Below are positions 4,226-61,924 of a stretch of DNA of 64,000 nt, piece after piece. The notes beneath the pieces are model-generated. The model made no database searches and was not told the DNA's origin. It saw only the letters and a program-made list of their open reading frames with translations. Position 1 is the first letter of the stretch. Each line of letters starts with the position of its first letter. The stretch covers positions 111,600,001 through 111,664,000 of the forward strand of contig NC_092344.1 of assembly GCF_963676685.1 (NCBI RefSeq). The letters are read 5' to 3'. Origin of the DNA: Mytilus edulis (taxonomy: Eukaryota). A program made the translations under genes and the position numbers.

Positions 4226-5302
4226 AATATATATGTATGGTAACTTTTCCTATAGGGGCATTTTGAAACATTTAAAATTATTACTCCCTGTTTGTTGTAC
4301 TATAAAAAACTATCGATACCAGAAACACCGGAAGTAACTTGCACGAGAAGCACTGTTATGGGTTTTTGCACGAGACGCCCCTGATATGGGTTATCAGTCC
4401 GGGTGGGAAATTATGGCTTGTGTACTTCCGCTCATTACACATATGCAAAAGCTATCATATCAATGCTAAGTATATGATAAACAGTGTTAATTTCCATTGT
4501 TTAACGCGAGCGTACATTTTATAAATGATTTTAAAATTGAATGAAAACTATGGTTCCTTATTTGTGCATTGTGATTAAAAAATCGTTACAGTATGTATAA
4601 TTACTTTCATTTGTTTCCAACTCTGTCTTGTATTGTTCTGGTCGTACTATTATTCTATTTCATGACTGCATCATGTGTTTCTATCAGTTAACCATAGTGC
4701 TATCACATGGTATGGTTAGAAATTAATGGTAAACCCTAGTTTTTTAAGTGTTTTAAGGTCTTATCTTACCGTTTTAATTTATTGACATAACTGCACGACC
4801 CGATTTTCAATTAACAGAGGTAAGATAATCGTTGCAAAGAATCCTGCTCAAACTTTTGTGAAAGACGGTTTTTAACTTTGAAATGTTGCGAGAGTTTATG
4901 TTCTATGTTGAAGGCATGTTTAGTGACCTGCAATACAAGTACTGTTCCATTGAGCTTAGTTATATGTCTTCTGATGCTGTTCCTGACCCATGTTTTCTGT
5001 ATTTGGCATGTGTAGTGCATCTTGACATAAGACATTGTAAAAACTATGTTAATTGGACATGCTTTGATACTATATATGCCCTTGAATTTTTACTAGATAA
5101 CATTTTTGTTCGCTTTGGGGATTCCGTATATCGTCAGATTATCGGAATTCCAATGGGGACTAACTGTGCACCACTTATTGCGGACCTGTTTTTGTATTGT
5201 TATGAGTTACAATTTATGACAAAAATAAGCAAAGACCCATCGAAACAACATCTGATAAACAAATTTAATTTATTTCTAAAAAAACAGTTGTTGGCATGAC
5301 AC

Positions 5303-5397
5303 GGGTTATGTTCTTCTCATATATTTTATGATAGTATGATACTAAACCCCTAACGGGAGGGATTGTACCTGATATTCATATGATGAAGACATAATCT
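5303..5397 (+). promoter_or_regulatory. Type II SECIS element (copy 1)
   Basis: AUGA (5328-5331) / UGAU (5370-5373) core, about 11-bp helix II, apical AAA followed by the CCC-CUAAC-GGG mini-stem, and lower helix GGGUUAUGU..UCAUAU / AUAUGA..ACAUAAUCU. Confidence 0.75.
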
Positions 5398-5578
5398 TTC
5401 AATCAGTTTAATTGAGGTCTGGAGCTGGCATGTCAGTTAACTGCTAGTAGTCTGTTGTTATTTATGTATTATTGTCATTTTATTTATTTTCTTTTGTTAC
5501 ATCTTTTGACATCAGACTCGGACTTCTCTTGAACTGAATTTTAATGTGCGTATTGTTATTCTTTTACTTTTCTACATT

Positions 5579-5669
5579 GGCTAGAGGTATAGGGGGAGGG
5601 TTGAGATCTCATAAACATGTTTAACCCCGCCGCAATTTTGCGCCTGTCCCAAGTCAGGAGCCTCTGGCC
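5579..5669 (+). ncRNA. Circularly permuted (P5-type) twister ribozyme, copy 1; predicted cleavage U5622/A5623
   Basis: GGCUAGAGGU(P5) AUA GGGG(P2) GAGGG [P1 region] U^AA CCCC(P2) GCC GCA-AUUU-UGC(P3) G CCUG-UCCCAAGU-CAGG(P4/L4) A GCCUCUGGCC(P5). This matches the twister core element by element. Confidence 0.85.
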
Positions 5670-5770
5670 TTTGTTAGTCTTGTATGATTTTAATTTTTTG
5701 TTTCTTGTGTATAATTCGGAGTTTAGTATGACGTCCATTATCACTGTACTATTATGCATATTTTAGGGGC

Positions 5771-5838
5771 CAGCTGAAGGACACCTACGGGTGCGGGAAT
5801 TCTCGCTACATTGAAGACCCATTGGTTGCCTTCGGCTG
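5771..5838 (+). ncRNA. Conserved multi-branch RNA structure of unknown function in the PLE 3' tail
   Basis: Closing stem CAGCUGAAGG/CCUUCGGCUG, a CACC-UACG-GGUG hairpin, a CGGG-AAUU-CUCG hairpin, UUGAAG, and an ACC-CAUU-GGU hairpin. Confidence 0.55.
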
Positions 5839-6606
5839 TTGTTTGCTCTATGGTCGGGTGGTTGTCGCTTTGACATATTCACCATTTCCTTTCTCAATTT
5901 TATTAATAATACTTTTAGATATTTGGATGATATTTTGGCTCTCAATAATGACGACTTCAGTATGTATATTAATGAAATTTATCCTGTTGAACTTACTTTA
6001 AATAAAGCTAATACTAACAATGACCACTGCCCTTTTCTCGATCTTGATATATATATCACTAATGGAAAGCTGAATACTAAAATTTATGATAAAAGGGATG
6101 ATTTTTCATTTCCTATCGTTAATTATCCGTTTTTAGATGGTGACGTTCCCTTGTCACCATCTTACGGTGTTTATATATCTCAACTTGTACGATTCGCTCG
6201 TGTATGTAACAATGTTTTAGATTTTAACGAGAGAAATTTATGTATTACTGAAAAATTATTACACCAGGGTTTTCGATATCACAAACTAGTCAAAACATTT
6301 ACTAAATTTTATCATCGGTATAAAGACATCATTCGTAAATATAGCTCAACATGCAGACTTCTAATACGTTCAGGTATTTCACATCCAATTTTTTATGGAA
6401 ATATTCTTTATAAAGCACAAAGGTGTCAGTATTCACCTCAGAAACTTACAAAACCTTTGAATAGACTTATTAAGAAAGGATATAATTACGATACTGTTGT
6501 CAAGTCATTAAAGATTGCATATTTTGGCGTTAATATTGAGTCACTGATAAGGTCTTTGCATCGGAACTAAACACATTTATTCTAAAAACAGTTCTTGGCA
6601 TGACAC

Positions 6607-6701
6607 GGGTTATGTTCTTCTCATATATGTTATGATGGTATGATACTAAACCCCTAACGGGAAGGATTGTGCCTGATGTTCATATGATGAAATCATAATC
6701 T
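6607..6701 (+). promoter_or_regulatory. Type II SECIS element (copy 2), about 35 nt after the PLE stop codon
   Basis: AUGA at 6632-6635, helix II GGUAUGAUACU/AGGAUUGUGCC, apical AAA plus mini-stem, then UGAU. Differences from copy 1 mostly preserve pairing. Confidence 0.78.
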
Positions 6702-6881
6702 TTCAGTCAGTTTAATTGAAGTCTGGAGCTGCATGTCAGTTAACTGTTAGTAGTCTGTTGTTATTTATGTATTATTGTCATTTTGTTTATTTTCTTTGGT
6801 TACATCTTCTGACATCAGACTCGGACTTCTCTTGAACTGAATTTTAATGTGCGTATTGTTATGCGTTTACTTTCCTACATT

Positions 6882-6972
6882 GGTTAGAGGTATAAGGGGA
6901 GGGTTGAGATCTCACAAACATGTTTAACCCCGCCGCATTTTTGCGCCTGTCCCAAGTCAGGAGCCTCTGGCC
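6882..6972 (+). ncRNA. P5-type twister ribozyme, copy 2 (one P2 mismatch)
   Basis: GGUUAGAGGU AUA AGGG GAGGG UUGAGAUCUCACAAACAUGUU U^AA CCCC GCC GCAUUUUUGC G CCUG UCCCAAGU CAGG A GCCUCUGGCC. Confidence 0.8.
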
Positions 6973-8990
6973 TTTGTTAGTCTTGTATTATTTTAATTTT
7001 AGTTTCTTGTGTACAATTTGGAAATTAGTATGGCGTTCATTATCACTGGACTAGTATATATTTGTTTAGGGGCCAGCTGAGGGACGCCTCCGGGTGCGGT
7101 AATTTCTCGCTAAATTGAAGACCTGTTGGTGAACCTCTGCTGTTGTTTTTTATTTGGTCGGGTTGTTGTCTCTTTGACACATTCCCCATTTCCATTCTCA
7201 ATTTTACTGTGATGAACTTTCGTACAGGACTGCTTTGTGTATTTTTGACATGGAAGTCTTGACCAGACTATGACTTTTTGACTCTTGACCTATGTACTTT
7301 GGGTGTGTCATCATGATACAGTGTGTTCCTTGGTTTATTACCCTGACATAAAAGTATAATTCTAAATTGACCTTGCTTCTGAATTTTTAGCATGAAGATG
7401 TACTGTTATAAGATGGTGAGTCTTGTGGCACGAGAAACTTCATATGAGCTTTACCTTTGCCCTCATTGTACAACTTGTATATTTTGTTTGAATTATATGG
7501 AGAATTGTCTGATTGCACTCATACCACATATTCATCTATATTAGATATATAGATATATTTGTTAGTTTTGTGTACAACGATGACCCTTTCCTCAACATCC
7601 GCTTTGTGATTTTTTTAGTCATGGAACTCTTGACCAGTCTATGACTTTTTGACTCTTGACCTATGCATATTGGGTGTGCCTCTTGGTATGATTACCTTGA
7701 AAAAGTCAGGAGTCTCTGGTTTATGTTAGTCTTGTGTGTTTTTAATTGTAAGTTCGGTTTTATGTATTGGAGTTTGAACTAGTACACATTTTGTTTAGGG
7801 GCCTTTTGAAGTCCGCCGGCGGGCGAGGAATTTTCTCACTTTGTTAAAAAGCCATTGGTGGCCTTCGACTGCTTTTTGCTCTTTTGTCATGTTACTGTCT
7901 CTTTAACACATTCCACATTTCCATTCTCAATTTTTGAATTGAAGAATGTTTTGATCAAATAAAAACTAAATCTTTTAATTGCCGTGGAAAATTAGAGAGA
8001 ACATTTACTGCTTCAATAGCACCATGTGCTGCTAGTTGTGATAGATATTTTAAAATGTTTCAATCATTTACCTTGGATTTCATTTCATGGACATGCGGAT
8101 ATGGATAGTTTGTTTAAACATCTTAAAAAATCACACAGAAGGTATACGCATATCAATAAACTGAACTCAGTGCAAAGAACCTTTAACATAGAGCTCAATT
8201 TATTGAAACACTTCGTTATGCTGGTCACTGTCTGTTACCAAACTGAACCGCAATCCTAAAAAAAATATGCAAGTGAATTCTATTAGAAGTAGAATTCAAA
8301 GGAAGTAAATAAACTGTTTATACTGAAATAAATATACAATATGTCTATGAGCCACAGATGCCACCGCTTGTGAAAAAAACCCACAAGTAAACTTCCACAT
8401 ATAGATGCAGGATTCACGTAATTTTTACTGTTTTGTGACCATAAGCATTGTGTATAAGTTTCAAAACATTTGGTTGAGGCAAACTAAAAAAAAACCCTAC
8501 TAGTATACATATTTTTTAAGGGGCCAGCTGAAGGACGCCTACGGGTGCGGGAGTTTCTCGCTACATTGAAGACCCATTGGTGGCCTTCGGCTGTTGTCTG
8601 CTCTATGGTCGGGTTGTTGTCGCTTTGGCACATTCCCCATGTCCTTTCTCAATTTTAAAGTTAAAGAACAGAAACAACAGATTTAGCATTTTTCCTATCT
8701 TAAGGCTCCGTGTTGATGTTTGTATCATTAGTACTCGTACCAACTTCTTATATCTAATAACTCATGAACAGTAACACCACCCAATATCAAACTTGATAGA
8801 TCTGTGTTATGAGGTAATAAGCATTACATATAAGGTTTATAACATATTTGATTGAGTCAAACTTATTAAAAAGAACGAAAACGAAAAATTCAGCATTTTC
8901 TATGTTTTTAAAGGAACATGATAACTTAATATGAACGGTAAAAGTGACGCTACCAAATATCAATTTTATTTTTATGTGGAAATAAGCATT

Positions 8991-10182
8991 GTCCCAGGTT
9001 AGGGAGATGATGGAGACCCCGCTAACATGTTCAACCCCGCCTTATTCAGTATGCATGTGTCTGTCGCAAGTCAGGAGCCTATAAATATGTATTTCTTTTC
9101 TCGTTTGAATTTCGTTTTTTTCTATGTTTTGATGTTATAATATTGTTTCACAAAAAAGCGAGAACGTTTGGTACCATTAAAACGTGTAATCCCTCTGCAA
9201 ATGTTTGCACCTGTCCTAAGTCAGGAATCTGATGTACATTAGTTGTCGTTTGTTTATGTAATTTATACGTGTTTCTCGTTTCTCGTTTTTGTCGAGCCTG
9301 CAACTTTTGTTGCAGAAAGCTCGACATAGGGATAGTGATCCGGCGGCGGCGGCGGCGGCGGCGTTAGCTAATTTCTTTAAAGCTTTATATTTTAGAAGGT
9401 GGAAGACCTGGATGCTTCATACTTTGTATATAGATGCCTCATGTTACGAAGTTTCCGTCAGCAAAAGCTTTATACATAGGACTATCAACATAATATCAAT
9501 GATTAGTAAAGAAGGCGAGACATTTCAGCGTGTGCACTCTTGTTTTTATATAGATTAGACCGTTGGTTTTTCCCGTTTGAATAGTTTTACACCTCTAGTA
9601 ATTTTGGGGCCCTTTATAGTTTGTTGTTCGGTATACGCCAATGCTCCGTGTTGAACGCTGTACATTGACCTATAATGGTTTACTTTTATGAATTGTTATT
9701 TGGATGGAGAGTTGTCTCATTGGCACTCAAACCACATCTTCCTATATCTATTTGCTCATTATTGAAGGCCGTATGGTGACATATAGTTGTTAATTTCTGT
9801 GTCATCTGGTCTCTTGTGGAGAGTTCTCTTTGGCACCCATGCCACATTAGTTGGAGGGCGGAGATCCCGCTAGCATGTTTAACCCGCCTCATTCTGTTTG
9901 AATGTGCCTGTCCCAAGTCAGGAGACTGTAATTCATGAATTGTCGTTTGTTTATGTGTTACATATTTGTTTTTGATCATTTATTGTACATAAATTTGTCC
10001 GTTTCTTTTCTCGTTTGAATTGTTTTACATTATCATTTCGGTGCCTTTTATAGCTGACTATGCGGTATGGACTTTGCTCATTGTTGAAGGCCGTAAGTTG
10101 ACTTATAGCTGTTAATTTCTGTGTGATCTAGTCTTTTGTGAAGATTTCTTATTGGCTCTCATGTCACATCTTCTTTTTTATT
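8991..10182 (+). mobile_element. Stack of PLE 3' tails from different families with three decayed twister motifs (about 8995-9080, 9157-9232, 9853-9928)
   Basis: CTGTCGCAAGTCAGG, CCTGTCCTAAGTCAGG and CCTGTCCCAAGTCAGG (P4/L4), each preceded by a YAA-YCC-type segment. Tails end in GTTGTCTCATTGGCA...CCACATCTTC-like sequence. Confidence 0.75.
9286..9543 (+). mobile_element. Short HINE (Helentron-associated non-autonomous element) nested in a PLE tail
   Basis: 5' TTTTTGTCGAGC...GCTCGACA inverted repeat, (GGC)n microsatellite, 3' AGGCGAGACA sub-terminal repeat plus short hairpin, inserted in a T run. Confidence 0.65.
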
Positions 10183-20789: not shown

Positions 20790-21114
20790 CATTTATAGTG
20801 GATTGGGAAACAAGTTATTGTAACGTATATCAATCCCTTTCCACTTTGCAGTGTTGCCTTGCATGCAGCGGCATTAGACTATTTTTCGAAATCTTCAAGG
20901 GTGTCTTTTACGTGCAAGAGATATGGCTCTCTCTTAACACGGGTCAGCCATTTATCGTCCCCTTCCGACGGACTATCATCGTTTTCTCAAGACCATACTC
21001 GCAAATGCTGTCAAGGGAGAGCCGAAAATACAATCCCTGAAATTTCTCCCCGGATTGGGGATCGAACCAGGAACCCTTGTGTTAGTAGTCCGATGCACTA
21101 CCACTACACCACGG
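20790..21114 (-). mobile_element. tRNA-derived SINE (central region resembles a Deu/Nin-type domain)
   Basis: Minus-strand head CCGTGGTGTAGTGG (A box) ... GGTTCGATCC (B box), then GTCGGAAGGGGACG...GCACGTAAAAGA and an AT-rich tail. Confidence 0.7.
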
Positions 21115-22264
21115 AGGGAGAGTTGATTTCGGACTAACATGTTTCACCCGGCTACTTTCAATCTGTGCCTGTCCCAAATCAGGAGCATATACTATATTGG
21201 TTTTCGTTGGTTAATGCCTGTCAAATTTGTTTTTTATATTTTTTTTGGTCGTAATTTTTTTTCTTCGTTAGAATGGTTTTAAATGTTGTTATTTCGTAGT
21301 CTTTTATAGCGGACAATAACATATTTGCTTATTATTCAAGGTAATACAGTGACCCATGCATATTTGTGTAAATCCGCTCCATTTGGACTCTGTATGATAG
21401 TTGTTACACTGACAGTCTTGCAATAACTCTTATCTTATAGAAGCTATACGTGTTGTTATTTAGTCAGTTTGCGCACAAAAACTAGCTTACTGAATATTTC
21501 TCGAAATTATTTTTAATACAGTTATTCATAACGATATAGGAAAACAGCTGTAATGAGCAGTTATTTTTTTAATGATCAGATAATAATATTTTGTCCATAT
21601 ACGAGTACCAAAGACGACAACTTGATGGCATGCTGAATGGCAGATTTATTGCAAAAAACAATACATAATGATAGCAAAAAAATTATATATATAATAATTC
21701 TTTAATGTCATACATGAAAAAAGTAAATTAACAAATATAACGAACTCCATGGAAAGATCTAAACGGAAATGATAAATTCAAAAGCTCAAACACTTCAAAC
21801 GAATGGACAACAGCTGTCATATTTTCAACTTTGTACAGGCATTTTCTTATGTAGAAAATGGTGGTTTTATAGCTATCTATGACAGTCGCATACAATTCCA
21901 TTATATTGACAACGATGTGTGAATAAAACAAAAAGACATAATAGGTAAAATTGTCAAAGTAGGGGTACAGCAGTCAACACTGTTTTGTATTCATAATCAC
22001 TATAAAAAAAGCAAACATACCGACAAAGATAAACAAAAAGGAATATCGACAAAGCACATTAGCAAAAACGAAAGACAAAAATAAAAAATTACCGTAGCAC
22101 AATAACACAACGACGCACCGAGCTACGTCAAATTAATATCACCAAAAATAGAATAAACAGTAAAAGTAATAACTTACAAACAAATAAAAGAATACTATAA
22201 TAAAGTTCACGTTATTAGGCAGATACATAACTCTATACTCCAAGACCATCTTGTGTTATTTATA

Positions 22265-24330
22265 TAAAAAAAAGAAGAAGTGGTATGATTATCAATGAGA
22301 CAACTCTCCACAAGAAACCAAAATTACACAGAAATTAACAACTATAGGTCACCGTACGACCATCAACAATGAGCTAAGCCCATACCGCATAGTCAGCTAT
22401 AAAAGACCCCGAAATGACAATTTGTAAAACAATTCAAACGAGAAAACTAACGGCCTTATTTATGTATACAAAAAATGAAAGAAAAACAAATATGTAACAC
22501 ATAAACAAACGACAACCACTAAATTACAGGCTCTTGACTTGGGACAGGCACATACATACATAACGGGGTTAAACATGTTAGCGGGATCCCAACCCTCCCC
22601 CTAACCTGGGCCAGTGGTATAACAGTATAACATAAGAACGAACATAAAAATCGGTTGAAAAAGGCTTAACTCATCAGATGGACAAAAATACAAGTGGACG
22701 TGGTCGGGTACTTGTACATCCATTTAGTTGATACTGAATATTCATCAACAAGGTTTTGGTATCTTCCGATGAACTTTTTTTTAGAAAAAGGACGAGACGT
22801 TCTTCGATCATCAACTTTCTGCTCAGACACTGGTGACGTTTTACAAAGTCTGAGTAGCAACTGCAAGCTCTTGTATATCGATTGAGTTGGGAAATGCATA
22901 TCCTACATGAATGTAGATGAAGTTGGTATACTAGTATTGCTACTAAGGTTTGGGGAGGGGAATTGATAATTTCAAAACTAAAATCGTTTCGTTTGTCATA
23001 GATTCTGGTACTGAGATGACCGCTTATGTCAAATTCGAGGTATAAGTCTAAAAATGAGGCAGAGGAAGTCGTGTCAACTGCTGGTTCCAAGTCCAAGTCC
23101 GAGTAGGGAAGTCATTTTTCATCTAATTGGCAAAATCGTATGTTTTATTTTTGGCGCAAATAATATCCATGTAATTTTGAAACATGTGGCGCAATCGTAG
23201 CTTTGGAGAAACAAGTTGTGGCGCAAAAGGACGCATTTTTGGCGCAAACGGATATCTCCCAAAAAGTCTGCCTCCAAATCAACAAATATGTTGTCAATAA
23301 GAAACTTAGCATACTGATAACTTGATTCTCTGTGTATCATGTTTTACTTTTTTGTTCACTACTAACAACATATGCCGTTTGGTACTCAAAGTAATAATCT
23401 TATAGCGTATTCTTCTAATTTTATGTTGAGAAGCATTGTGGGTTATTATTTTTTTTAGGTTTTTTTTCCAATTTCACATGTGATATGGTGGTATACAGGG
23501 TTGAAGAATCAAAGTTTTGACAGAACTAATTTCAGAGAAAGATCGAGATTTAAAATTTCCGAGAAGTTCTCCGGAGTTTTTATAGATACCACTACGCGAG
23601 TACACAGTTTCACAGTATTTCTGAATACCTTCTTTCACTGCGAACAGAATCTTTGTCAATCTAATGGACATTTTTTTAGTTTTTGTTGGTTGCACGCAAT
23701 TTTGTGAAGTTTACGTATCCAATACAGACAAGGTAAGTTCACCGATTTACTATTCAATATAATGTTCATTGGAGCCATGAAGGAATTATGATTCGCCAAA
23801 ATCTCATCCTTGTCAAATGATATGTTTTGAATGTGGATTTTAATTTTACCTGGGTGCTTATTTGTTCCTTATTCCTTTACAAGACACTCGTAGTAGTACA
23901 ATTTACACACAAAGACAATTTTATTTGAAGCTTTGTCCGCAGGAACTACAACATACTTATCATGAATACAGACTTCGGTCGATCATTCACACAGTTTTTC
24001 AACTTATGAATGCAACGTTTTATCAGATACATGGGTTCTTTGTTATACAACTTGACTAAGCACTCGGAGTACACAATTTGTGCTCGAAACACCAAATAAA
24101 TCCAGTATTATGATTGGTTGATTCCTGATTCTGAGTGCAAAAGTCATGCTCGAAATTTGTATTACCACAAGGCCTGATTGTTTTGACCCATTCTGTCAAA
24201 GTGTCAAGTTCAACTTAATCATCAATGGAATCCATTTTTATTTTGAAGTTAGTATTCCAATTGATTTTTTAGGGTTCTCTTAACTTAGGACCATGAGAAA
24301 TTACCTTTGCGAAATGTTCATGTTAAGGTA
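22265..24330 (-). mobile_element. Old degenerate PLE copy (RT remnants plus 3' tail)
   Basis: Remnants GPKLREP..INWN, VPADKASN, LYWIRKLHK, FLIDNIFV, ASFLDLYLE and TRIYDKRNDF with many frameshifts. The tail is at 22265-22700. Confidence 0.85.
22516..22617 (-). ncRNA. P5-type twister ribozyme, second family (partly decayed)
   Basis: Minus strand: CAGGU UA GGGG GAGGG UU GGGAUCCC GCU AACAUGUU U^AA CCCC GUU ... G CCUG UCCCAAGU CAAG A GCCUG. Confidence 0.72.
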
Positions 24331-26205: not shown

Positions 26206-26300
26206 ATGGCAATTTTCCTGACATTACAGGACATTTTAAGAAAAAAATGGTGGGTTAAACCTGGTTTTGTGGCATACCAAACCTCCAGCTTTTATGGCAA
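26206..26300 (-). ncRNA. Decayed P5-type twister, third family (GAGGU/UACC type)
   Basis: Minus strand: GCUG GAGGU UUGGUAUGCCA CA AAACCAGGUU U^AA CCCACC AUUUU..AAAAU GU CCUG UAAUGU CAGG. Confidence 0.6.
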
Positions 26301-26472: not shown

Positions 26473-28105
26473 GATGAAAAAAGTTCGAAACCCAAAACAA
26501 GTACAAAGTTGAAGAGCACTGAGGACCAAAAGTTCCAAAACGTTGTGCCCAATACCGATAGGGTTTTCTGCCTGGGATAAGAAAATCCTCATTACTTAGA
26601 ATAATTTATACTTTTGCAAACAGTAAATTTTATAAAATAACTATATAACAGATATACATGATAAAACCGAAGTGGTGACTAAATACAGAATAAAAACAGA
26701 TACAATACAGAAAAACAACCTAATCCAGCACATAAAAATACACAGCCGAGTTAGCTAAAGCCATCAACGCACAAAGTGACGTCACATTTGAAATTCTAAA
26801 AAAAACCCACACAAAGTGACGTCACATTTTAATTTCTAAAAATATTTCCCAAAAATAAGATAGAATTAGGATTGAATCAAGATTAATTTGTAATACTGGT
26901 ATTACATTTATTAATAAAAATGCAAATAACAATACTTATTAATATCAAACTGTGATAGTAATTAGATAATTAATTGTATTATCTAGCTATTTCAATGTTT
27001 CATCTGAATCAAACTGTAAACCAAATATATCGTATAAATTTCGTTGACGCAAACTAAAATATAAAAACAAAAATCTGGTAGGTGATTTCAGAGACGAACA
27101 AATCTAGATATAGGAATATGTGGTGTGAGAGGTCTTTTTAAAAAATGAGATAATTTCAGAGGCGCACAAACCCAGGTTTCCGAATTTTGAGAAGCTCTAC
27201 AATACGATTTTAGTTCTCTGCTATAAGAAGGCATGTAAGCGTCAAAGCTTACACTATTTATATAATACAATCGTTTGTCGGATTTTCTCTTTAATTAGGT
27301 AAACGCTGTTTATATAGAGAATCTATCGAGATAGACGCTCAAAATGTCTTAGATGCATGATCTTTTTTGTTAAGGGTTTTGAAGTACTCTCAGATATGTA
27401 TTTAATGTTTTTTTGTTGATTGGATGTAGATGTACTCTACCACGTCCAATCTGTGTTTTTGTTAGAAGCTTTTCTATTTGTATCCATCTGATAGTTAAGC
27501 CTTTTTAACTGTTTTTTTGTTGTTGTACTATTACAACGCTGTCTCAGGTTAGGGGGATGATTGGTGCCTTCAAACTTGTGTGGCTCCGCAACATTCTGTA
27601 TGTGTATGACCCAAGTCAGGAGCCTGTAATTCAGTGGTTGTCATTTGTTGTTGAGTATCATTTTTGTTTTTGTTCATTACTTTTTACATAAAGTATACCG
27701 TTAGTTTTCTTGATTGAATTGTTAAATGTTATTTAGGGGCCTGTTATAGCTGACTTTGTGGTAAAGGATTTGCTCATTGTTGAATGCCGTATGGTGACAT
27801 ATGGTTGTTATTTTCTATGTCATTTGGTTTCTTGTGGAAAATTGTCTCATTGGTTATTATACCGCATCTTATTTTTAGATTAAGTTCGTTCCTCCATTGG
27901 ATTCACAACTTTAATAATAAGTAGATGCCTACCTTAAAAGTCCTTTGAACTTCATTACCTGACAGACTTAATCAGGTAGCTTCCACTGTTCTACTATCAT
28001 TATTAGGATTAAAATTGGCAACGTGTTATCAAAACCAAATAGTTTTATTTTATTTAAACAGTTTATGATATGAAATTAAAATCTTATACATTAAAATGAA
28101 TCAGG

Positions 28106-36316: not shown

Positions 36317-37486
36317 ATATCAAAATAGTTATAAAGCCAAACAAGTACAAAGTTGAAGAGCATTGAGGATCCAAAAGCTGTTATAAATACTGTATAATAA
36401 TGATAAATAATAATTCACATTGTGGCATATCATATCAAACTCTGGGGTACTCTTCATTATTCATTGAAAAAAGCAATTTGAATTACCAAACCAGAAAAAA
36501 AATCAACCTTTGGAACAAATGGAAAATTACGATCCTAATCAGGGGCCCTACTTTGTTATGTGTTCTACATTTGGAAGTCGGCTTTATTTTGAAGATATAA
36601 CATATTAAGCAAAATGTATACAATATCACGAATATAAATTTAATGTTAAAGCAACTTGATTAAAAGACTGGGGACTAACTGTGCACCACTTATTGCGGAC
36701 CTGTTTTTGTATTGTTATGAGTTACAATTTATGACTAAAATTAGCAAAGACCCATCAAAACAACATTTGATACAAAAATTTAACAATACTTTTAGATATT
36801 TGGATGATATATTGGCTCTAAATAATGACGACTTCAGTATGTATACTAAAGAAATTTATCCTGTAGAACTTACTTTAAATAAAGCTAATGATAACAATGA
36901 CCACTGCCCTTTCCTCGATCTTGATATCTATATCATAAACGAGAAGCTTAATACAAAAATTTATGATAAAAGAGATGATTTTTCATTTCCTATTGTTAAT
37001 TATCCATTTTTAGATGGTGACGTTCCCTTGTCACCATCTTATGGTGTTTATATATCTCAACTTGTACGATTCGCTCGTGTATGTAACAATGTATTAGATT
37101 TTAGCGAGAGAAATTTATGTATTACTGAAAAATTATTACACCAGGGTTTTCGATATCACAAACTGGTCAAAACATTTACTAAATTTTATCACCGGTATAA
37201 GGAAATAATTCGTAAATATAACTCAACATGCAGACATCTTATACGTTCAGGTATTTCACATCCAAAATTTTATGGAAATATTCTTTATAAAGCACAAAAA
37301 TGTCAGTATTCTCCTCAGAAACTAACAAAACCTTTAAATAGACTTATTAAAAGGGGATATAGTTACGATACTGTTGTCAGGTCATTAAAGATTGCATATT
37401 TTGGCTTTAACATTGATTCACTGATAGGGTCTTTGCATCGGAACTAAACACATTTATTTCTAAAAAAACAGTTGTTGGCATGACAC

Positions 37487-37581
37487 GGGTTATGTTCTTC
37501 TCATATATTTTATGATAGTATGATACTAAACCCCTAACGGGAGGGATTGTACCTGATATTCATATGATGAAGACATAATCT
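37487..37581 (+). promoter_or_regulatory. Type II SECIS element (copy 3)
   Basis: Same sequence as 5303-5397, with AUGA at 37512-37515. It starts about 40 nt after the ORF stop. Confidence 0.75.
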
Positions 37582-37762
37582 TTCAATCAGTTTAATTGAG
37601 GTCTGGAGCTGGCATGTCAGTTAACTGCTAGTAGTCTGTTGTTATTTATGTATTATTGTCATTTTATTTATTTTCTTTTGTTACATCTTTTGACATCAGA
37701 CTCGGACTTCTCTTGAACTGAATTTTAATGTGCGTATTGTTATTGTTTTACTTTTCTACATT

Positions 37763-37853
37763 GGCTAGAGGTATAGGGGGAGGGTTGAGATCTCATAAAC
37801 ATGTTTAACCCCGCCGCAATTTTGCGCCTGTCCCAAGTCAGGAGCCTCTGGCC
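37763..37853 (+). ncRNA. P5-type twister ribozyme, copy 3; predicted cleavage U37806/A37807
   Basis: Identical to 5579-5669. Confidence 0.85.
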
Positions 37854-38171
37854 TTTGTTAGTCTTGTATGATTTTAAATTTTAGTTTCTTGTGTATAATT
37901 CGGAGTTTAGTATGACGTCCATTATCACTGTACTATTATGCATATTTTAGGGGCCAGCTGAAGGACACCTACGGGTGCGGGAATTCTCGCTACATTGAAG
38001 ACCCATTGGTTGCCTTCGGCTGTTGTTTGCTCTATGGTCGGGTGGTTGTCGCTTTGACATATTCACCATTTCCTTTCTCAATTTTATTTCAATTTAAATC
38101 TAGTATTATGACTAGTATTCTTAGAAATATTAAAGTAGAATGAATAACATTAAAAGAAATTCTGACGTCTG

Positions 38172-41100
38172 TCAATCCATTTCACGCATTCTTTCACGTT
38201 CTCCTTTTAATGTTTTATAACCTGTTGGAAGGAATTCAAACCTCGTTGATATTCGGTCCTTTGTTTCTGCGTTCACGTAAGTGCCTATCATTTCGGTGCC
38301 AGCAATTTCAAGCTCTACCCATCCAAAGGCATACACAGGCCATATTCCATTAGGGGGGTCGATATGAATTTTTGCATGTAAGTTGCATCCTTCGTCTGTA
38401 ACATACATCGGCTTTTTGTCATCAGAAATATAAATTTCAACAGCAAAAGGTTCCGTTCTTTTAGTTTTGGAATCTTCACTTTCAAAAGTATTATTAATCT
38501 CAATCATACCTATATCCCCCACATGAACGTCTTGACCTTCAACAAAACAAACATGAAAAATGTGTTTACACCAGTCTTCATTATCCCATCTATAATATTT
38601 TCCCCTTCGGTGCTCTCCTTCCTTGAAAGGACGGCTTATGCTGACGCCATACGTATAATTACACACTCTAGATGTTACTATAGAAGAATCATGACCATAA
38701 ATTACAGCCCCCTTTAACACAGATAATCCACCTTCAACTGGAATGAAAACCTCTAATTCTAACGCGTCTTTAATAGCTTTCTGTAACATCGGACATTCTG
38801 AAAACCCCCCAACTAACATAACAGCTGATACGTCACGACATCTGTCATGCTTCAAAATATCTTTAATTTCTTTAATTGTCATTGAAATGGATTCACTGTA
38901 AAACGATTGAAATAGTTCTCGATCGATGAATAGTTTGTCTCTTTTCACCCTAAGTTTACCACTGAAGCGAGAATTTTCTATTATGTTTGAAATACTGCAA
39001 CCCGTCTTCGATTCTAAAAGCTCTGCTAAGTTTGCTGGAAATCTAGTTGATATATCAGAGTTTTCATTTCCTTTGAAGGATTTCTTTGCCGTTTCAAAGC
39101 ACCTCATCATTTCATTATAATCTAATCCCTGTGTTTGTTTAAATTCCATGAATACATCTCCTCCTAGCAGTTTCTTTAGTAATTTCCGATACTCTTGGTT
39201 GACCCATTCACCACCCCACGAACCTCCACATATTTTATGTATTATTTTCAAGTGACCATCAGGTAAAACTTCTTGGGCAGATATGTCAACAGTACCACCT
39301 ACAAAAAAGTTATATGGTTATTGTATCCCTTACAATTACTTTTGTAATTGATACGTCAAATGCACTAGGTATAAGTCAAAAATATGTTAACTATAGAACT
39401 ATTAAACCTACAAATAGGTGACATGTCAACTGTACTACCTACTCAAAAATGACATGTAAATAGAACAAACATCAATAGATTGATATGCTAAAAAAATCAT
39501 CTTAGGATTCACTTATTCTCAAAACGTTAATTGGATACGCTCGTTTGGTTATGTTGACAAAAACATAGATGTGGGTATCAGAAATGCTTGAACGATTTGC
39601 CGTCGGTAAATTTTCATATAAAGAAATAAGTATAATAATAACTGTATACTGCACTAGACGTAATATTCTGTGTACATATTTTCTAGCTTTACCGAGACCA
39701 TACCGGGAGGGTCATTTAGAAATCTAAGCTTATCGTAGAGATTTGTCCAAATGCGATCCAAAACAAATACGGTGCAATAAAACTTCATCTTTATTCCTTT
39801 ATATTTTGATTTTTTTTAGCATAACAGTGCAACAAAAAAACATTGAACAAATTAATAGGTTATTTTTGATTTTTAATGCTTGGTTTTGCTTTGTACTTTT
39901 CACGATATTTAGCTATTTTCATGATAGTTGTTGTTTGAAGAGCGCATATTAAATAATAATATTACCCCCAGCATCAACTACCATAACCTTTCTGCCAGGA
40001 TCAAACGATCTTAGTATAGTTGTTTGATTTTCTCCTACAAATTTTTCTACAGGTATGAGACGCATATATATTGATGCTGCCTCAGGCTCATACACAATGC
40101 AGAATTTATCACCTGTAATTCCTGCCTGAAAGAAAATGAACGTCGAGTGTGTTATTATTTGCAATACACAACTAAAATTACATATATTTTGTCAATGTTC
40201 AGATGACGTTCAACGTGCTATAGTCGCATAAAAAATGCAAACACTAGTAATCGCTCAAAAGAATACCACTTACTTCAGATGACTCTAGGGTTCGTCACAG
40301 AGGTTTTTTGATTAATGAACAATAACGTTTCACATATTTAGTTCTCTGGACAAAAGGCTGTTTTAAAAACTAAACTCATTGAAACCGTATTCATGTAAAC
40401 TCCAATTTAACCCCTTATCTAAAAATGGGCTACGAATGAATCGGGCGTGTAAATGGAAGAATGTCAACATTGAAAGCGAAACAAGGACCGATTCGATCAA
40501 CAAAAAACTGCTGTGGATTCATTATTATTCATTTGATATAAACTTTCTTGGATTTCGTGGTTACAGGTCAACCACGAGTTTAAATGTTCAACGAATTACA
40601 AATTTTCAATAAGGTTTTTATGCAGATTTGGGCAAATCCACAAAATTGAATGTTCATGAAAATACCACCTTTCATCAATCCACGAAAATTGGTACTTACG
40701 AAAATAAATAAATCCACAGTAATCCCGATGCAGGTAGAAACGAAAATTAATAAATATATTTTAACCTATTAATATGAAATCAAATAGACATAGAAAAATC
40801 AAATTGCACGAGTTCGCTATTTATTTATATGCATGTTTATGTTAATATCGGGTTATATAACCATCTGAAATTCTTCGGTGGTCACCATGATGGTTCTAGA
40901 ATAAAATACACACGAAATGTTAATACATATCATCGAGCATATGCACTGTAAATTATATATTTTAGACATTTTATGAATTGGATATACGTTTTAGTATGTT
41001 ATAAAAAAAACATAAGAATTTGAGTCAAATCAATGAACATGAATTTGACAGCTAGTGTCCCTTTAATACTGTTCCCCATGATTTTTTTATATATAAAAAA

Positions 41101-45144: not shown

Positions 45145-48100
45145 ATGGCTGTCCCCCAAGATTCTACTTTGGTTGTTGCTATAGACATAGGAACAACCTA
45201 CAGTGGATACGCCTTTTCTTTTGGTCATCAATATAAATCCAAACCATTAAATATAACGTCCCATAGCTGGCCAGATGGACCGTCATACAAAACGCCCACG
45301 TGTGTTCTTCTAGACTCAGAGAAGACGTTCCATTCCTTTGGACGCGAAGCTGAAAACAAATATATTAGTCTTGCAGAAAATGAGGAACATGAGGATTGGT
45401 ATTTTGTTACAAGGTTCAAGATGTTATTGATGGAAAAAGAGGTAAATTGTTCTAAAAATAAAGTAACATTAAAATAGCAATTCCGCTAATATATGATTTC
45501 ATTTCATTGTTGATTTTGATTCGGTATCGTTAAAAAGCTACGTTGATATATGACGCACTTTATCTATATTTATGGAGTCGTATTTACAGAATATTGAGAC
45601 TATTTTTCTATCTTTACAACGGGAGGTTTTTGAAACCAAAATAGTTATAAATAGAAGATGTGGTATGATTGCCATTGAGACAACTCTCCACTAGAGACCA
45701 AAATGACACAGCAATTAGCAACTTTAGATCACCGTACGGGCTTCAACAATGAACAAAGCCCAAACCGCATAGTCAGCTATAAAAGGGCCCGAAATAACAA
45801 AATAGACAAAATAGCTAGTTTGTTTGTCAATTTCTTCATTCGTCAGTATACACTCGTTTTGTTATTTTTTTCCAATAAGTCAACTCATATTCATCATCTT
45901 AAATTTGGTTAAACAATTTTAACTTATGTTTCTTCCAGGATTGTAAAAATTCTGACTACATGTATATACTAAAAGAACAAATTTTTTTTTTCAGGAATTG
46001 GATGAAAATACTTTAGTTGAAGACATGGATAAGAAACCTATATCAGCTTTGCTTGTTTTCACCGAAGCTATCAAATACTTGAAGAACCATTTACTGAACG
46101 ACCTTAAAAAACGTAACTTAGACGTCCCCGATAACCAAATAAAATGGGTACTTACAGTTCCCGCTATCTGGTCAGATCCGGCAAAGCAATTTATGAGAAC
46201 AGCTGCTGAACGGGTAGGATTTTTTTCAAGAGAATACTTTGAACTGATTGTTAATGATATTTATTTTATCGAGTTTGCAATACTCCACTTTTAATTTTGA
46301 TATATCTGTTTGTTTTCATAGTGATAAAGATTATAACACAATGTTGATTGCTGTACTCCTATTTTTGACATTTTGACATTTTTTAAATGTCTGGTTTTTT
46401 TTGTTCACACATCGTGTCAATATAATGGAATTTGATGCAAATGTCATACAAGTGAAAAGTTGAGCTAGGTTTAAAACCAGCTTTCATTTTCTATATATGA
46501 ATATGCTTGTACCAAGTCAAGAATATGACAGTTGCTATCCATTCGTTTGATAGCTTTGAGCTTTTGGTTTTGTCATTTGATTAGGTACTTTAGTATGGAT
46601 TACACTTTTATTTTTACACTGTTCACTATGTTTTGTTGAGGTTTTATGATAATATAAACATATAGACTTTGATTTGTACATTTGAAACTAATATTTTCAA
46701 CAATTATAGCATTTCCATCTGTAATGTGCCTTGACAATTCTTCCAACATTTTTCGACATAACATTATGCCAGAAACACTTCTACTCAAATTGAGCATACA
46801 ATTGTAATCTTGATCTTTGTAGGCCAATATACCTCATTCATCGTTAACTCTCGCATATGAACCAGAAGCTGCAGCATTGTACTGTAGACTCTTGCCAATA
46901 GACACCATGAAAGTCGCAGGAGGGACTAACTACTTATCTTGCTTTGAACCTGGAAAAAAGATAATTATTGTTGACTTGGGAGGTAAAACATCTTTTTCTA
47001 TAAAATGTTTTAATTTTACAGTTGTTAAATTCTAAGGTTGTTGCTCTCTGATAGACAGTTTTCTCAATGGCAATCATACTACAGCTATTTATTTGTATTA
47101 GAAATATCATCCAAAATTTTGTCATTTTTTTCCCGTTTTATAATTCTAGTGGCATATGTCCTTATTCACTATACCAATTTGTAATCAGAAGACCACATTT
47201 TGTACTGTTTTAAATTTACAAGAAATCAGGTTGTTCAGGTATAATATATTAACATTTAAATCTAAGAATTAGTTTTGTACAATTATGTTCAATATAGAAA
47301 ATGAAATGGTATCTCGTTACAGGTGGAACCGCTGATATATCAATCAATGAAGTAACAAAAGAACACAACTTGAAAACTATTGACAGAGCCACCGGAGGAG
47401 ACTGGGGAGGAACTAATATAGATAAAAAATACTTGAAATTTTTAGAAGAGGTCCTTGGGAATAATATTATGGAGGAAATTAGGAGAGATTATAGAAGTGA
47501 TTTGTTAGAAATTCAACAGGATTTCGAAGAACAGAAACGTAAAGTAACGCCCGATCGCGATCATGATGTCGTTATCCGTATGCCTGGTGGGGTAATGGAA
47601 ATTATTCGGAACAAAAAGCAAAAGCTGGCCGATATTGTGGAGTCATCTGAACATTCCGGTACGGTGTCAGTGAAGGAAAATCAGAGAGACAGGCTACATA
47701 TTAAAGCTCGTATCTTTATTAGCTTCTTTAAGGAAACTACTCAGCACATTATATCTCATTTACAGCAGGTTCTAGACAGCAGACATTTAGGACATATACC
47801 ACCTGCTATGGTGATGGTTGGAGGATTTTCAGAATCAGTGATAGTCACAGATGCTATTCGAAACCACGAATCTTTTCAAAATATTAAGGTTATTATTCCT
47901 ACTGAGGCAAGACTTGCTGTACTGAAAGGAGCCGTTTTATTCGGACATAATCCAACTGTGGTGATATCAAGAATGGCGAAATATTCTTATGGCATTCGAT
48001 CATATAGAACTTTCAAAAAAGGCGACCCGGTTGAGAAGAGACTCAAAGAAGAGGGAAAAGAGTGGTGCAGAGATTATTTCAAAAAATTATTCACAATTAA

Positions 48101-54600: not shown

Positions 54601-57600
54601 ATCATTCGGTTTAAACTGAAAGCCGTAGAAAAGAATATCATTCATTTTGTCAGACAGTCCATTTGGAAATATGAGCTCCTTTGTCTATGAGTAAAATGAA
54701 ATGCATTTTCTCCATTTATTTGACATGAAATTTGTACCCTATTGAATCTCCTCACAGCGTCAGGGTAGAAGTTATATATGAACCTTACCTTCATAAACAT
54801 AAGATAAAGACGAACACAAAAAGATTACCAAAGTGAATATTCATCACCCTCTTGAAAAGCGAAAACAAAAACACATTCGTGCAACAAATAAGGAAGACGC
54901 TAATATGATAATATTTAACAAGGAAGGAAAAATAATTTACAATATACCTATTAGCATGTTAGGGATAGGGGAAATACAAATATCATTTGCCGATGACATA
55001 TTTGTGTTGTGCCTTTGAGTGCCAATTAATAAATGCCATCTTTTATTTCTTTTTGCTTTGTATACAAAACATCTGTCCCATGGTTGTTCTGAGCTGTCCA
55101 ATTTAGTGCCAGCACAGTTTCAAACTGTTTTCCTCAATCATTGATTAACTTAGAAAGGAACATGTTGATCGTAAAAATCATTAGACAATTTACATTATCT
55201 GTCAGAGTTGTCAGTATAAACACCATTCACTGTATTCTGACGGAGCGACTCTCAGACGGTTATCAACGTTACAGAACACATCATTGCCTTTACCATCCTA
55301 GTCATTAAAATGGAATCAAAGCTTTACTGATAAGCTTTCAACCAGTTACATAATCACAGTTATACGTAAATACATAAACTATTCTTGGTTGGGAAAGATA
55401 GGAAAAAGGAAAATCACAAAAATACTGAACTCTAAGAAAAATTTAAAAATGAAAGTCCCTAATCAAATGGCAAAATCAAAAGCTGTAACACATCAGACGG
55501 ATGTATAACAAATGTCATATTCCTGACTTGGTACATGAACCGAAGTTATATCTGTAGTTTATCGGCCTAGTTTCATATCGTAGAAATGTTTTTTTTTCTC
55601 GTATGGTCCTTATTTTGTCTTGAGGTTTTATACATATAGACAATTTATGGTACACCCAGTTCGCTCTGGTTTTTATTAATTTTACATAATAGTACTTGCA
55701 AATCAATATAAACAAAAAATGTTTTGGTTGAAAACATATGCTTCGAATTAGAATACTGCCAAAATAACTTTCTCTTTGCTGGATTTTATCCCTAAAATTA
55801 ATTTGTTGTACCTTTTCAAAATTCAACACAACCGACAACCAGAAACGTTGTTTATCCAAGTTAAACCCTCAGGATAGTAAACATCTTTTAAATATCTTGA
55901 ATAATTTGGAAAAAAGTAATATCACAAAAATACGGATCTCCGAGGAAAATTCAAAATGGAAAGTCCCTAATCGAATGGCTAAAAAAAAACCCACATCAAA
56001 CAAATGGATAACAAATGCCATATTCCTGACTTGGTACAGGCATTTTGAATTGTTCCTATTGGTTCTAAAATTTTGGTTGTCGATTTTTAGTTTGTATTAT
56101 TGAACTGTACTAAACCTAAGGATGTAGCTTCATCAGGTGTTTATCTTTTGTAATTTCGAACTTTCTGTGTATGCCTTTTTCCGTTTTGTTGCTCTGAAAT
56201 GTTGCTTTTGATCTGTAATGATTCACATCATTAAACACAACTGAAATATTACGTTCATTTTTTTCATTTGATGCAAAAATCACATTGGGTAATGCTCTTT
56301 CGTGTTTGATTAACTTAAAGGAATCTTTTTTGAAGAAAAGTAATTTACCAAGATTGATATATTTATAATTTACGAAAGTAAGCAATGGCGTATTTTCTTT
56401 GTTGTAGCTGTGTTTTTCGTCATAAATATGAACAGTTATAATTGAATTGCATTTTCGGTATTGACATTTGTTTAGTGTTGTGTACCTATTGATATACTAC
56501 TAATTGATGCAAAAATACTGAACTCCAAGATTAATTCAAAATTTGGAATTTTATAAAAACCAACAAACTTATTTTATCAACCAACGGAACATTGAAAAAC
56601 CACGGTCACATTCTTGAATTGAAACAGGCATTTTGTGAATTAAATATTGGGTCAAACTTCGTTTTATAGCTAACTCAAGCTGCCACTTGTATGACAGTTG
56701 TTTATAATTTCGTTGTATTGCCAAAACGGGTAAAGAAACAAACAGACGTAATATAGGTTAATGTGACATAAATTGGGATCCAGCAGCCAAAACTGTGTTA
56801 ACATACATCAAAGACATAATTATACATCTGACTAAAAATTCAAACAAACATACAAATATATCTAACAAAGACGCCAACAAAATTTAAGGTGTTGAAGTTG
56901 ATAATATTTCACAAAGTCTACAAAAAAATGTGTTTGTCGTTGATATTAAATTGGCAAAGACGCCAATAAAAAAAATTTGAGGTTGATAGTGCATTTGAAT
57001 AATGGTTGTTTCGTGAGTATTAAGTATTTGTATCAGATTATTGGTGGAATCGTGTGAAATTATTTTAAAATTGATTTGTGTTGTTGGACTGTAGTTTACT
57101 ACCAACTGTTCTGTCTTTATTTTTCACAATATCAGAATTTCATATGGAGATTTTATAATTGATTGCAATATATACTTCAAAGTATGTTTAAGTTTTCTCG
57201 TAGTTGGACGTAAATGTTAACAACTTATATTGATGTGACTGCATAGACTGTAAAGTAATTATCATCTTTTAATGAACAAAATTACAACTGGTCTGCAAGG
57301 TATAAAACTGTACTTGCCAAAATATACTGTGTCAAAACCCTAGGTGAAGCACGAAAACTCGACGAGACTAACTGAAGCTATTCTTTATATAGTCTAGTTG
57401 GTCGAGTAGTCTATGGCGCTGGGCAAATTGCAGGAAGTATAGTCATATGTCCCAAAAGCAGGGGTTCGAAGTTCATTGAGGGAAAAACGTATCTTAATGA
57501 TTTTGCAGATCTAACCTTTGTCGGCCTAAATTCATGACGAAGTATAATACACAAAACACTATCAAAGATTTTTGAAACGATGGCGTCGGATTGCACAACA

Positions 57601-61672: not shown

Positions 61673-61924
61673 TAAAATTGAGAAAAGAAATGGGGAATGT
61701 GTCAAAGCGACAACAACCCGACCATAGAGCAGACAACAGCCAAAGGCCACCAATGGGTCTTCAATGTAGGGAGAAACTCCCGCACCCGGAGGTGGTCTTC
61801 CCCTGGCCCCTAAAAAGATATGTATACTAGTACAGTGATAATGGACGTCATACTAAACTTCGAATTATACACAAGAAACAAAAATTAAAAATCATACAAG
61901 ACTAACAAAGGCCAGAGGCTCCTG
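61673..61924 (-). mobile_element. Short 5'-truncated Naiad 3' tail
   Basis: Reverse complement of about 5655-5902. It begins inside the twister at CAGGAGCCTCTGGCC. Confidence 0.85.

Follow-up and report, generated by a model that had tools for sequence, protein, structure and literature searches.

A probable type-P5 twister-class ribozyme fold without P1, putatively self-cleaving, in the 3′ tails of Naiad Penelope-like elements of Mytilus edulis

In Mytilus edulis, Naiad-type Penelope-like elements carry in their 3′ untranslated region (UTR) and pseudo-LTR a conserved 91-nt segment that is probably a type-P5 twister-class ribozyme fold with a P3 hairpin, putatively self-cleaving. Judged from sequence comparison, the motif is a twister variant that lacks the P1 helix and is carried in the Naiad tail, with a catalytic activity that we infer. 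The window, by which we mean the whole stretch of DNA analysed, covers 64,000 nt of assembly GCF_963676685.1 (NC_092344.1, positions 111,600,001-111,664,000 of the forward strand). Three near-intact copies, 98% alike, were read on its plus strand at 5579-5669, 6882-6972 and 37763-37853, each displaying every core element of twister and closed by a 10-bp P5. The covariance model R2, built on unrelated contigs, finds all three at E values of about 1e-18 (81.8 bits and E 1.3e-18 for the first, 77.8 and 81.8 bits for the second and third), in agreement with the sequence-only reading that had claimed three such copies with a full core and a 10-bp P5. The first copy lies within a 5′-truncated Naiad tail that is itself inserted into another Naiad copy, and the second and third lie in tails that follow reverse transcriptase (RT) open reading frames (ORFs) at 5839-6570 and 36656-37447, respectively.

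The anatomy of the motif is best followed in the first copy, all on the plus strand. It opens with the 10-nt 5′ strand of P5 (5579-5588, GGCUAGAGGU), followed by AUA (5589-5591), the 3′ strand of P2 (GGGG, 5592-5595), the GA dinucleotide that precedes T1 (G5596 and A5597) and the GGG of T1 (5598-5600). A 21-nt linker (5601-5621) then leads from T1 to the scissile U5622 and to A5623 and A5624 (5622-5624), the predicted cleavage site being located between U5622 and A5623. Downstream are the 5′ strand of P2 (CCCC, 5625-5628), G5629 and C5630 of T2 with C5631 after them (5629-5631), and the P3 hairpin (5632-5641) with its closing pair C5631-G5642. P4 is formed by CCUG (5643-5646) and CAGG (5655-5658) around the loop UCCCAAGU (5647-5654), and after A5659 the 3′ strand of P5 (GCCUCUGGCC, 5660-5669) makes 10 bp with GGCUAGAGGU. 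This is the order expected of a twister with its ends in P5. The element order also puts the predicted cleavage at the position given in the sequence-only reading, U5622/A5623. The minimum free energy fold of the motif yields P5, P3 and P4 (z = -2.8).

The sequence around the motif belongs to a retroelement. Self-comparison of the window revealed a 634-bp block repeated on the plus strand at 5269-5902, 6575-7206 and 37452-38088, the last of which begins 4 nt past the stop codon of an ORF (36656-37447, +) that is the C-terminal part of a Naiad RT and bears Penelope-type motifs (GTNCAPL, FRYLDDIL, CPFLDLDI). The insertion at 5269-5902, with a possible target-site duplication TTAAT, sits in a further copy of the Naiad ORF; its empty site is 63523-64000, within another ORF copy (62613-64000, +; KR-rich block and RT) that runs past the window end and served as the empty-site reference. 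Across the 1.37 Gb genome, the best 40 matches show about 100% identity to the block along its whole length. The end of the RT ORF lies directly upstream in 27 of 29 genomic copies, the other two being cut a few bases further upstream, and the 3′ flanks differ in all 29 copies compared. Near-identical blocks with the ORF end upstream and differing 3′ flanks identify the block as the 3′ UTR and 3′ terminus of a retroelement that is very young and truncates at its 5′ end on insertion.

Naiad features are present in this host. In L031 a partial head-to-tail copy of 875 bp precedes a full unit of 4031 bp, as in the pseudo-LTRs of Penelope-like elements, and a longer tandem is found in L033; partial tandems, 5′ truncation with variable 5′ ends and a shared 3′ end, and a unit length within 3.4-4.4 kb are thus all seen. 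The Naiad diagnostics lie in one reading frame, comprising the KR-rich block, SCNCS (CxC), GPKY, ADKA (DKA, not DKG), LPKLHK and the RT core; the stretches read in the host ORF are ADKAANN, SCNCS, GPKY and RKNRSHGRRKNRNQRK. The same frame also contains, before the KR block and interrupted by TGA codons, GIY...YVGETGR...EH, a putative endonuclease that is read at motif level only. A Pfam search of the ORF pieces returned no significant RT or GIY-YIG match (best RVT_1, E 0.17), and the classification is based on the motifs named by Craig et al. 2021 (PMC8557442) and on 4538 homologues. On these sequence grounds the host is a Naiad-type Penelope-like element, and the location of the motif in Penelope-like element tails, which the sequence-only reading had claimed, is upheld by the RT ORF context and can be specified as the 3′ UTR and pseudo-LTR of Naiads.

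The element has a further peculiarity in its coding sequence. Beyond nt 2897 of L031, every in-frame stop ahead of the terminal TAA at 6023 is a TGA codon (3179, 3272, 3305 and 4580); two of these occupy cysteine-like positions around the GIY-YIG motif, and another comes straight after ADKAANNIIIV. A SECIS-like element is located between the stop codon position and the twister (5318-5382, +; RF00031, 30.9 bits for a gathering score of 35) and occurs at the same place in 8 metagenome loci. With four in-frame TGA codons and this element, the host looks like a candidate selenoprotein-encoding Naiad, a kind described in clams and spiders (Craig et al. 2021, PMC8557442). Separately, the final ~160 bp of the Naiad tail are found again by themselves, without the twister, at identities of 75-92% (5747-5902, 7047-7206, 7775-7934, 8498-8657 and, on the minus strand, 61673-61924); these are either short 5′-truncated tails or a 3′ module shared with other elements. 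Just downstream of the third tail, a 359-aa ORF on the minus strand (38172-39251) has weak, sub-threshold Pfam matches to HSP70 and FGGY_C, of the actin-like ATPase fold.

The association with Naiad RTs was examined in 80 metagenome contigs with RT relatives (37-99% identity), oriented on the RT strand. A first covariance model, R1, was made from seven sequences and described P2, P3 and P4 only; R2 was rebuilt from its metagenome matches, and the models span only the ribozyme core of 71-81 nt. R1 gave 32 matches at E <= 1, all but one on the RT strand and nearly all downstream of the RT match, most of the motifs starting ~300-330 nt past the estimated ORF end. R2 placed 33 of 35 matches on the RT strand, and those already found by R1 now scored 44-83 bits. 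Where 500 nt or more were available downstream, the motif was present in 9/9 loci at RT identities of 60% or more, in 15/17 at 50-60% and in 3/14 below 50%. At amino-acid identities of at least 50%, 24 of 26 related RTs are therefore followed by the motif, and its place, mostly ~300-330 nt after the stop, is kept in RT lineages down to ~43% identity.

Conservation of the fold was assessed by covariation in A7, the R2 alignment of the metagenome matches, which comprises 29 distinct rows and none from this genome. In this alignment 92% of cells were paired, against 72.8% in shuffles (none of 500 reached 92%); both sides change in 18 of the 25 pairs, and the covariation score was 0.449, whereas shuffles gave 0.149 and slid controls no more than 0.068. 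Since the search model itself fitted P2, P3 and P4, these helices are biased towards it: P2 was 95% paired with all four pairs changed on both sides, and P4 97% paired with two pairs changed on both sides (C-G/A-U/G-C and C-G/U-A). T1, T2 and both of the palindromes described below lie outside the search model. T1, which joins the CCC of loop L4 with the GGG after GA, was 94% paired, with the variants GGG/CCC, GGU/ACC, AGG/CCU and AGA/UCU recognised by eye. T2 joins the G-Y of L4 with the G/A/C-C junction that follows P2; one of its pairs occurs as C-G (12), A-U (8) and G-U (5), and the other is an invariant C-G.

P5 was tested with the 22-nt flanks of each match at 38 loci, and flanks paired across loci served as the control. 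The flanks form helices of 10-20 bp whose sequences are unrelated between lineages, with a mean energy of -15.9 kcal/mol versus -6.3 kcal/mol for cross-locus pairs, and 68% of the loci's own pairs lay beyond the 5th percentile of that control. The permutation of type P5, in which the motif ends within P5, is thus present both as the 10-bp P5 of the window copy and as lineage-specific complementary flanks. Altogether P2, P3, P4, P5, T1 and T2 all covary in 25-29 distinct sequences from unrelated metagenome contigs. The sequence-only reading had held that P5 differs between families and still pairs, and that the pseudoknot partners change together: the flanks at the 38 loci bear out the former, and for the latter the GGG/CCC and GGU/ACC partners recur and are joined by AGG/CCU and AGA/UCU. 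The covariation it had named as decisive for P2, P4, P5 and the pseudoknot is found in the metagenome alignment against shuffled, slid and cross-locus controls.

In 25/25 distinct sequences the GA dinucleotide, A+1, A+2, the C of T2 and, within the loop, the third C and the G are invariant, and N-1 is U in 21/25. The nucleotides that define the twister class (A+1, A+2, GA and the CC-AAG of L4) are present in 25/25 or 23-24/25 distinct sequences; the choice of these positions reportedly goes back to the work of Roth in 2014 and to crystal structures. At the level of comparative sequence analysis, a twister-class fold opened at P5 is established.

One twister feature is missing. No P1 helix adjoins the cleavage site: the linker from T1 to the scissile U is without cis pairing (minimum free energy 0 kcal/mol) and in every lineage holds two self-complementary stretches, X and Y, in place of P1 (5602-5611 and 5612-5623 of the first copy, +, with Y spanning the scissile bond). 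X takes forms such as GAGAUCUC, GGGAUCCC, GGGCGCCC, GCAGCUGC and GGCAUGCC; Y appears as AACAUGUU, AACUAGUU, AACCGGUU and AAACGUUU, often across the scissile U-A, and its pairing would engage the scissile dinucleotide. The palindromy of both is maintained via compensatory changes, as two helices in A7, and the homodimers predicted for 27 distinct sequences have energies of -13 to -23 kcal/mol. From these modelled energies, X and Y may be a dimerisation device. P1 has been reported as dispensable for twister catalysis, and we know of no twister with two palindromes in its place.

The motif also escapes the available Rfam models. At the gathering threshold the whole window gives no match at all, which means no hammerhead in the window either. 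In a permissive search twister-P1 aligns with P3, P4 and the loop only, at 12.9 bits in the first family and 16.5 bits in the family b copy introduced below, for a gathering score of 67.2. The permissive twister models had no match in 19 metagenome loci, and RF02684 applied to the whole genome had none among the 79 scored of ~31,000 rough candidates. The comparison with Rfam proposed in the sequence-only reading thus turned out negative at the gathering score, leaving the partial twister-P1 alignment.

R2 found 14 sites in the window, and these reveal further families of the motif. Of the decayed or partial relatives listed in the sequence-only reading, nine are confirmed by R2 (E 2e-12 to 1e-3), two, at 29418 and 55521, are marginal, and those at 21815, 34930, 42910 and 56610, fragments with the 3′ part of P4/P5 only, have no R2 match. 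The strongest of the nine is the twister of family b in the tail of a second Naiad family (22532-22604, -; E 2.2e-12), with a P5 of CAGGU/GCCUG and an outer 7-bp helix. Family b also includes a copy that is 5′-truncated near GAGGG (9847-9923, +; E 4.6e-11) and a decayed one (8999-9076, +; E 2.4e-9), both family b-like, and a decayed copy at 27549-27621 (+; E 5.3e-5). Two more decayed sites are a copy with nearest relatives of the L068/L069 type (9155-9226, +; E 4.5e-9) and a 5′-truncated one (21111-21184, +; E 7.5e-7). Family b has at least 3353 genomic candidates, with variable 5′ ends and a 3′ end common to the copies. The RT upstream shares 65-68% identity with its counterpart in the first family, and the motif is kept; in the window self-comparison the tails of the two families can be aligned in the twister region only.

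Family c, in which GGU pairs with UACC, is represented by decayed copies at 46455-46522 (+; P5 UGUCAUA/UAUGACA; E 1e-3) and 26216-26292 (-; E 3.1e-6), a 5′-truncated one at 56024-56125 (-; E 7e-4) and fragments, and has at least 5499 genomic candidates. This family is older. It is known from the decayed window copies and from L018, L060 and L110, and its P2 register is tentative; in L110, a Naiad RT of 43% identity is followed by a sequence of family c type.

Every one of the 150 genome candidates scored with R2 matches at E <= 3e-10. Outside the window, at G000:C4:69224304-69226399, three strong R2 matches on one strand follow each other at an exact spacing of 1009 bp, a tandem array with one twister per unit that recalls retrozyme-like non-autonomous elements. 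Within the window, the region ~21040-21110, which abuts the truncated twister at 21111, resembles the reverse complement of a tRNA 3′ half and has a T-arm-like GGTTCGATCCC on the minus strand; ARAGORN detected no tRNA adjoining that copy.

The type-P5 twister ribozyme was reportedly presented by Roth and colleagues in 2014 (Rfam RF02684), and the Naiad motif shares with it N^AA, P2, the GC(C) junction, P4 with the loop YCCAAGY, GA with GGG, T1 and T2, as well as the same circular permutation with ends in P5. It differs in having no P1 hairpin, the 19-24 nt from T1 to the site holding two palindromes instead; in possessing both P3 and a long P5 of 10-20 bp; in one subfamily with a 2-bp T1 and a bulged P2; and in escaping the Rfam models. 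Twisters of types P1, P3 and P5 are known (PMC10085705). In retrotransposons, twister variants have been described at the 5′ end of Perere-3/RTE LINEs (PMC8501958; PMC7761336), where, as we propose here, a twister-class ribozyme would process the RNA of its element. Those variants are P1-like in type, lie at the LINE 5′ end and have a P1 derived in part from the target-site duplication, whereas the Naiad motif, of type P5, belongs to a Penelope-like element and is located in its 3′ UTR, ~280 nt before the 3′ terminus.

Penelope-like elements are known for minimal hammerhead ribozymes (Cervera and de la Pena 2014; Lunse et al. 2017; review PMC6765202), in which the stem next to the cleavage site has a palindromic loop and for which dimer cleavage, and slow cleavage, have been reported (PMC6765202). 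The parallels with the Naiad twister, whose self-cleavage is predicted, are a motif of a self-cleaving class in the pseudo-LTR or 3′ part, partial tandem copies, and the replacement of the scissile-side helix by a palindrome, so that two copies would have to pair. The ribozyme class is another one, with an unrelated fold, and two palindromes are found in place of one palindromic loop. Naiads themselves were described as being without canonical hammerheads, with no other ribozyme named and the word twister absent (Craig et al. 2021, PMC8557442). The present host has the features of that clade, namely a putative N-terminal GIY-YIG, the KR-rich block, CxC, GxKY and DKA, pseudo-LTR tandems, a unit of ~4 kb, in-frame UGA codons with a SECIS-like element and a high copy number, and differs in the twister of its tail. 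Twister goes unmentioned in a 2026 preprint that treats animal retrozymes as Penelope derivatives, and a paper of November 2026 cites the Perere-3 work alone for twister in retrotransposons. In keeping with the sequence-only reading, which knew of no description of twister paired with Penelope-like elements, our literature search on twister with Naiad, Penelope-like elements, Mytilus and bivalves, to which subscription journals were mostly external, found no such association.

To look for traces of cleavage, we aligned ~6% of one raw-read RNA-seq run (X24) to 37000-38150, around the third copy, where 37805/37806 corresponds to 5622/5623 of the first. The summed depth over the predicted site was ~430 with reads in both orientations, and depth was highest over the twister. 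At a threshold of a fifth of the depth, no pile-up of read starts or ends was seen at 37805/37806, nor was there a circular junction or any other joint at that site, so the accumulation of read ends anticipated in the sequence-only reading did not appear in this run. As the reads stem from thousands of copies, on both strands and many of them probably inside other transcripts, this gives no support for efficient cleavage in vivo and is not evidence against the fold. Common variants within the motif were C37765U, which turns a P5 G-C pair into G-U, U37796C in the linker and A37819U in the P3 loop. Eight reads with five start places contain a joint that leads back 34 nt, from 37833 to 37800, within the twister and off the cleavage site; a copy variant carrying a short duplication could explain it, as could a reverse-transcription artefact on structured RNA. 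In genomic copies, 5′-truncated insertions retain the sequence downstream of the predicted site, so the RNA that was reverse-transcribed had not been cut at its 3′ twister, and in the few cases seen no 5′ end of a truncated copy or pseudo-LTR falls at the cleavage site.

These last observations are the strength of the main alternative, that the motif is a twister-derived structured RNA with a non-catalytic job in the tail and that cleavage is negligible in vivo. Candidates for such a job are an RT recognition or priming structure, an RNA dimerisation module, a structure that stabilises the 3′ end in the absence of polyadenylation, or an aid to SECIS-dependent decoding. Consistent with it, the RNA-seq lacks a read-end signal at the site, insertion templates clearly kept the sequence beyond it, a SECIS-like element lies 200 nt upstream, and P1 is missing while the palindromes could serve dimerisation alone. 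Yet nucleotides that matter for catalysis only (A+1 and the G of GA) are invariant across lineages in which all helices have changed, and a structural role would not require the whole twister active-site architecture with both pseudoknots. We consider this alternative unlikely.

Another possibility is that the ribozyme is active and a selfish passenger, parasitising the tails of Penelope-like elements with no benefit to them. Such an idea has a precedent in Craig et al. 2021, who note that Naiads thrive without hammerheads and see hammerheads as possible parasites of these elements; the 1009-bp array, each unit of which has one twister, hints at retrozyme-like non-autonomous carriers. The fixed place after the stop down to ~43% RT identity and the presence in 24/26 loci at 50% or more fit vertical co-inheritance better than repeated capture, and make a mere passenger quite improbable. 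A resemblance that arose by chance in a repeat family, with no conserved structure, is scarcely credible: the lack of a significant Rfam match would agree with it, and covariation in seven helices together with the strand- and position-specific link to Naiad RTs in independent contigs contradicts it.

With a self-cleaving twister-class fold as the preferred reading, the RNA would cut itself between U5622 and A5623, leaving a 2′,3′-cyclic phosphate and a 5′-OH. Since Naiads form partial head-to-tail tandems, cuts in two successive tails would release a unit-length RNA; the substrate would be tandem or read-through transcripts, in the same role as that proposed for the hammerheads of other Penelope-like elements. 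Because P1 is replaced by palindromes without cis pairing, efficient cleavage probably needs a dimer of two copies, by analogy with the Penelope hammerheads.

A wider and more tentative reading, which we regard as possible rather than probable, is that Penelope-like element tails need a self-cleaving ribozyme of any class and that Naiads use a palindrome-gated dimeric twister, not a hammerhead. Naiads would then have replaced the hammerhead or never had one. In both classes the scissile-side helix would have become palindromes, so that a single copy is off and paired copies are on, the pairing copies being tandem units of one transcript or two separate RNAs. X and Y, similar in length, would give two side-by-side intermolecular helices, and each cleavage site would lie at the border where one helix stops and the other starts. 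To our knowledge, such a dimeric architecture is undescribed for the twister class.

In bivalves and many other invertebrates, no Penelope-like elements are more abundant than Naiads. They had been described as the exception without a hammerhead, and the ribozyme was consequently suggested to be dispensable or a parasite (Craig et al. 2021, PMC8557442). If the Naiad twister self-cleaves, self-cleaving RNA would be a general requirement of this class of retroelement, met by two unrelated folds. Our reading, if true, would also reveal a very large unannotated population of twisters missed by Rfam models, of which this genome alone could hold, judging from the density in the window, tens to hundreds of thousands, and a retroelement twister located in the 3′ UTR, not at the 5′ end. 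A natural twister without P1 and with paired palindromes would furthermore be a test case of dimer-gated ribozyme activity.
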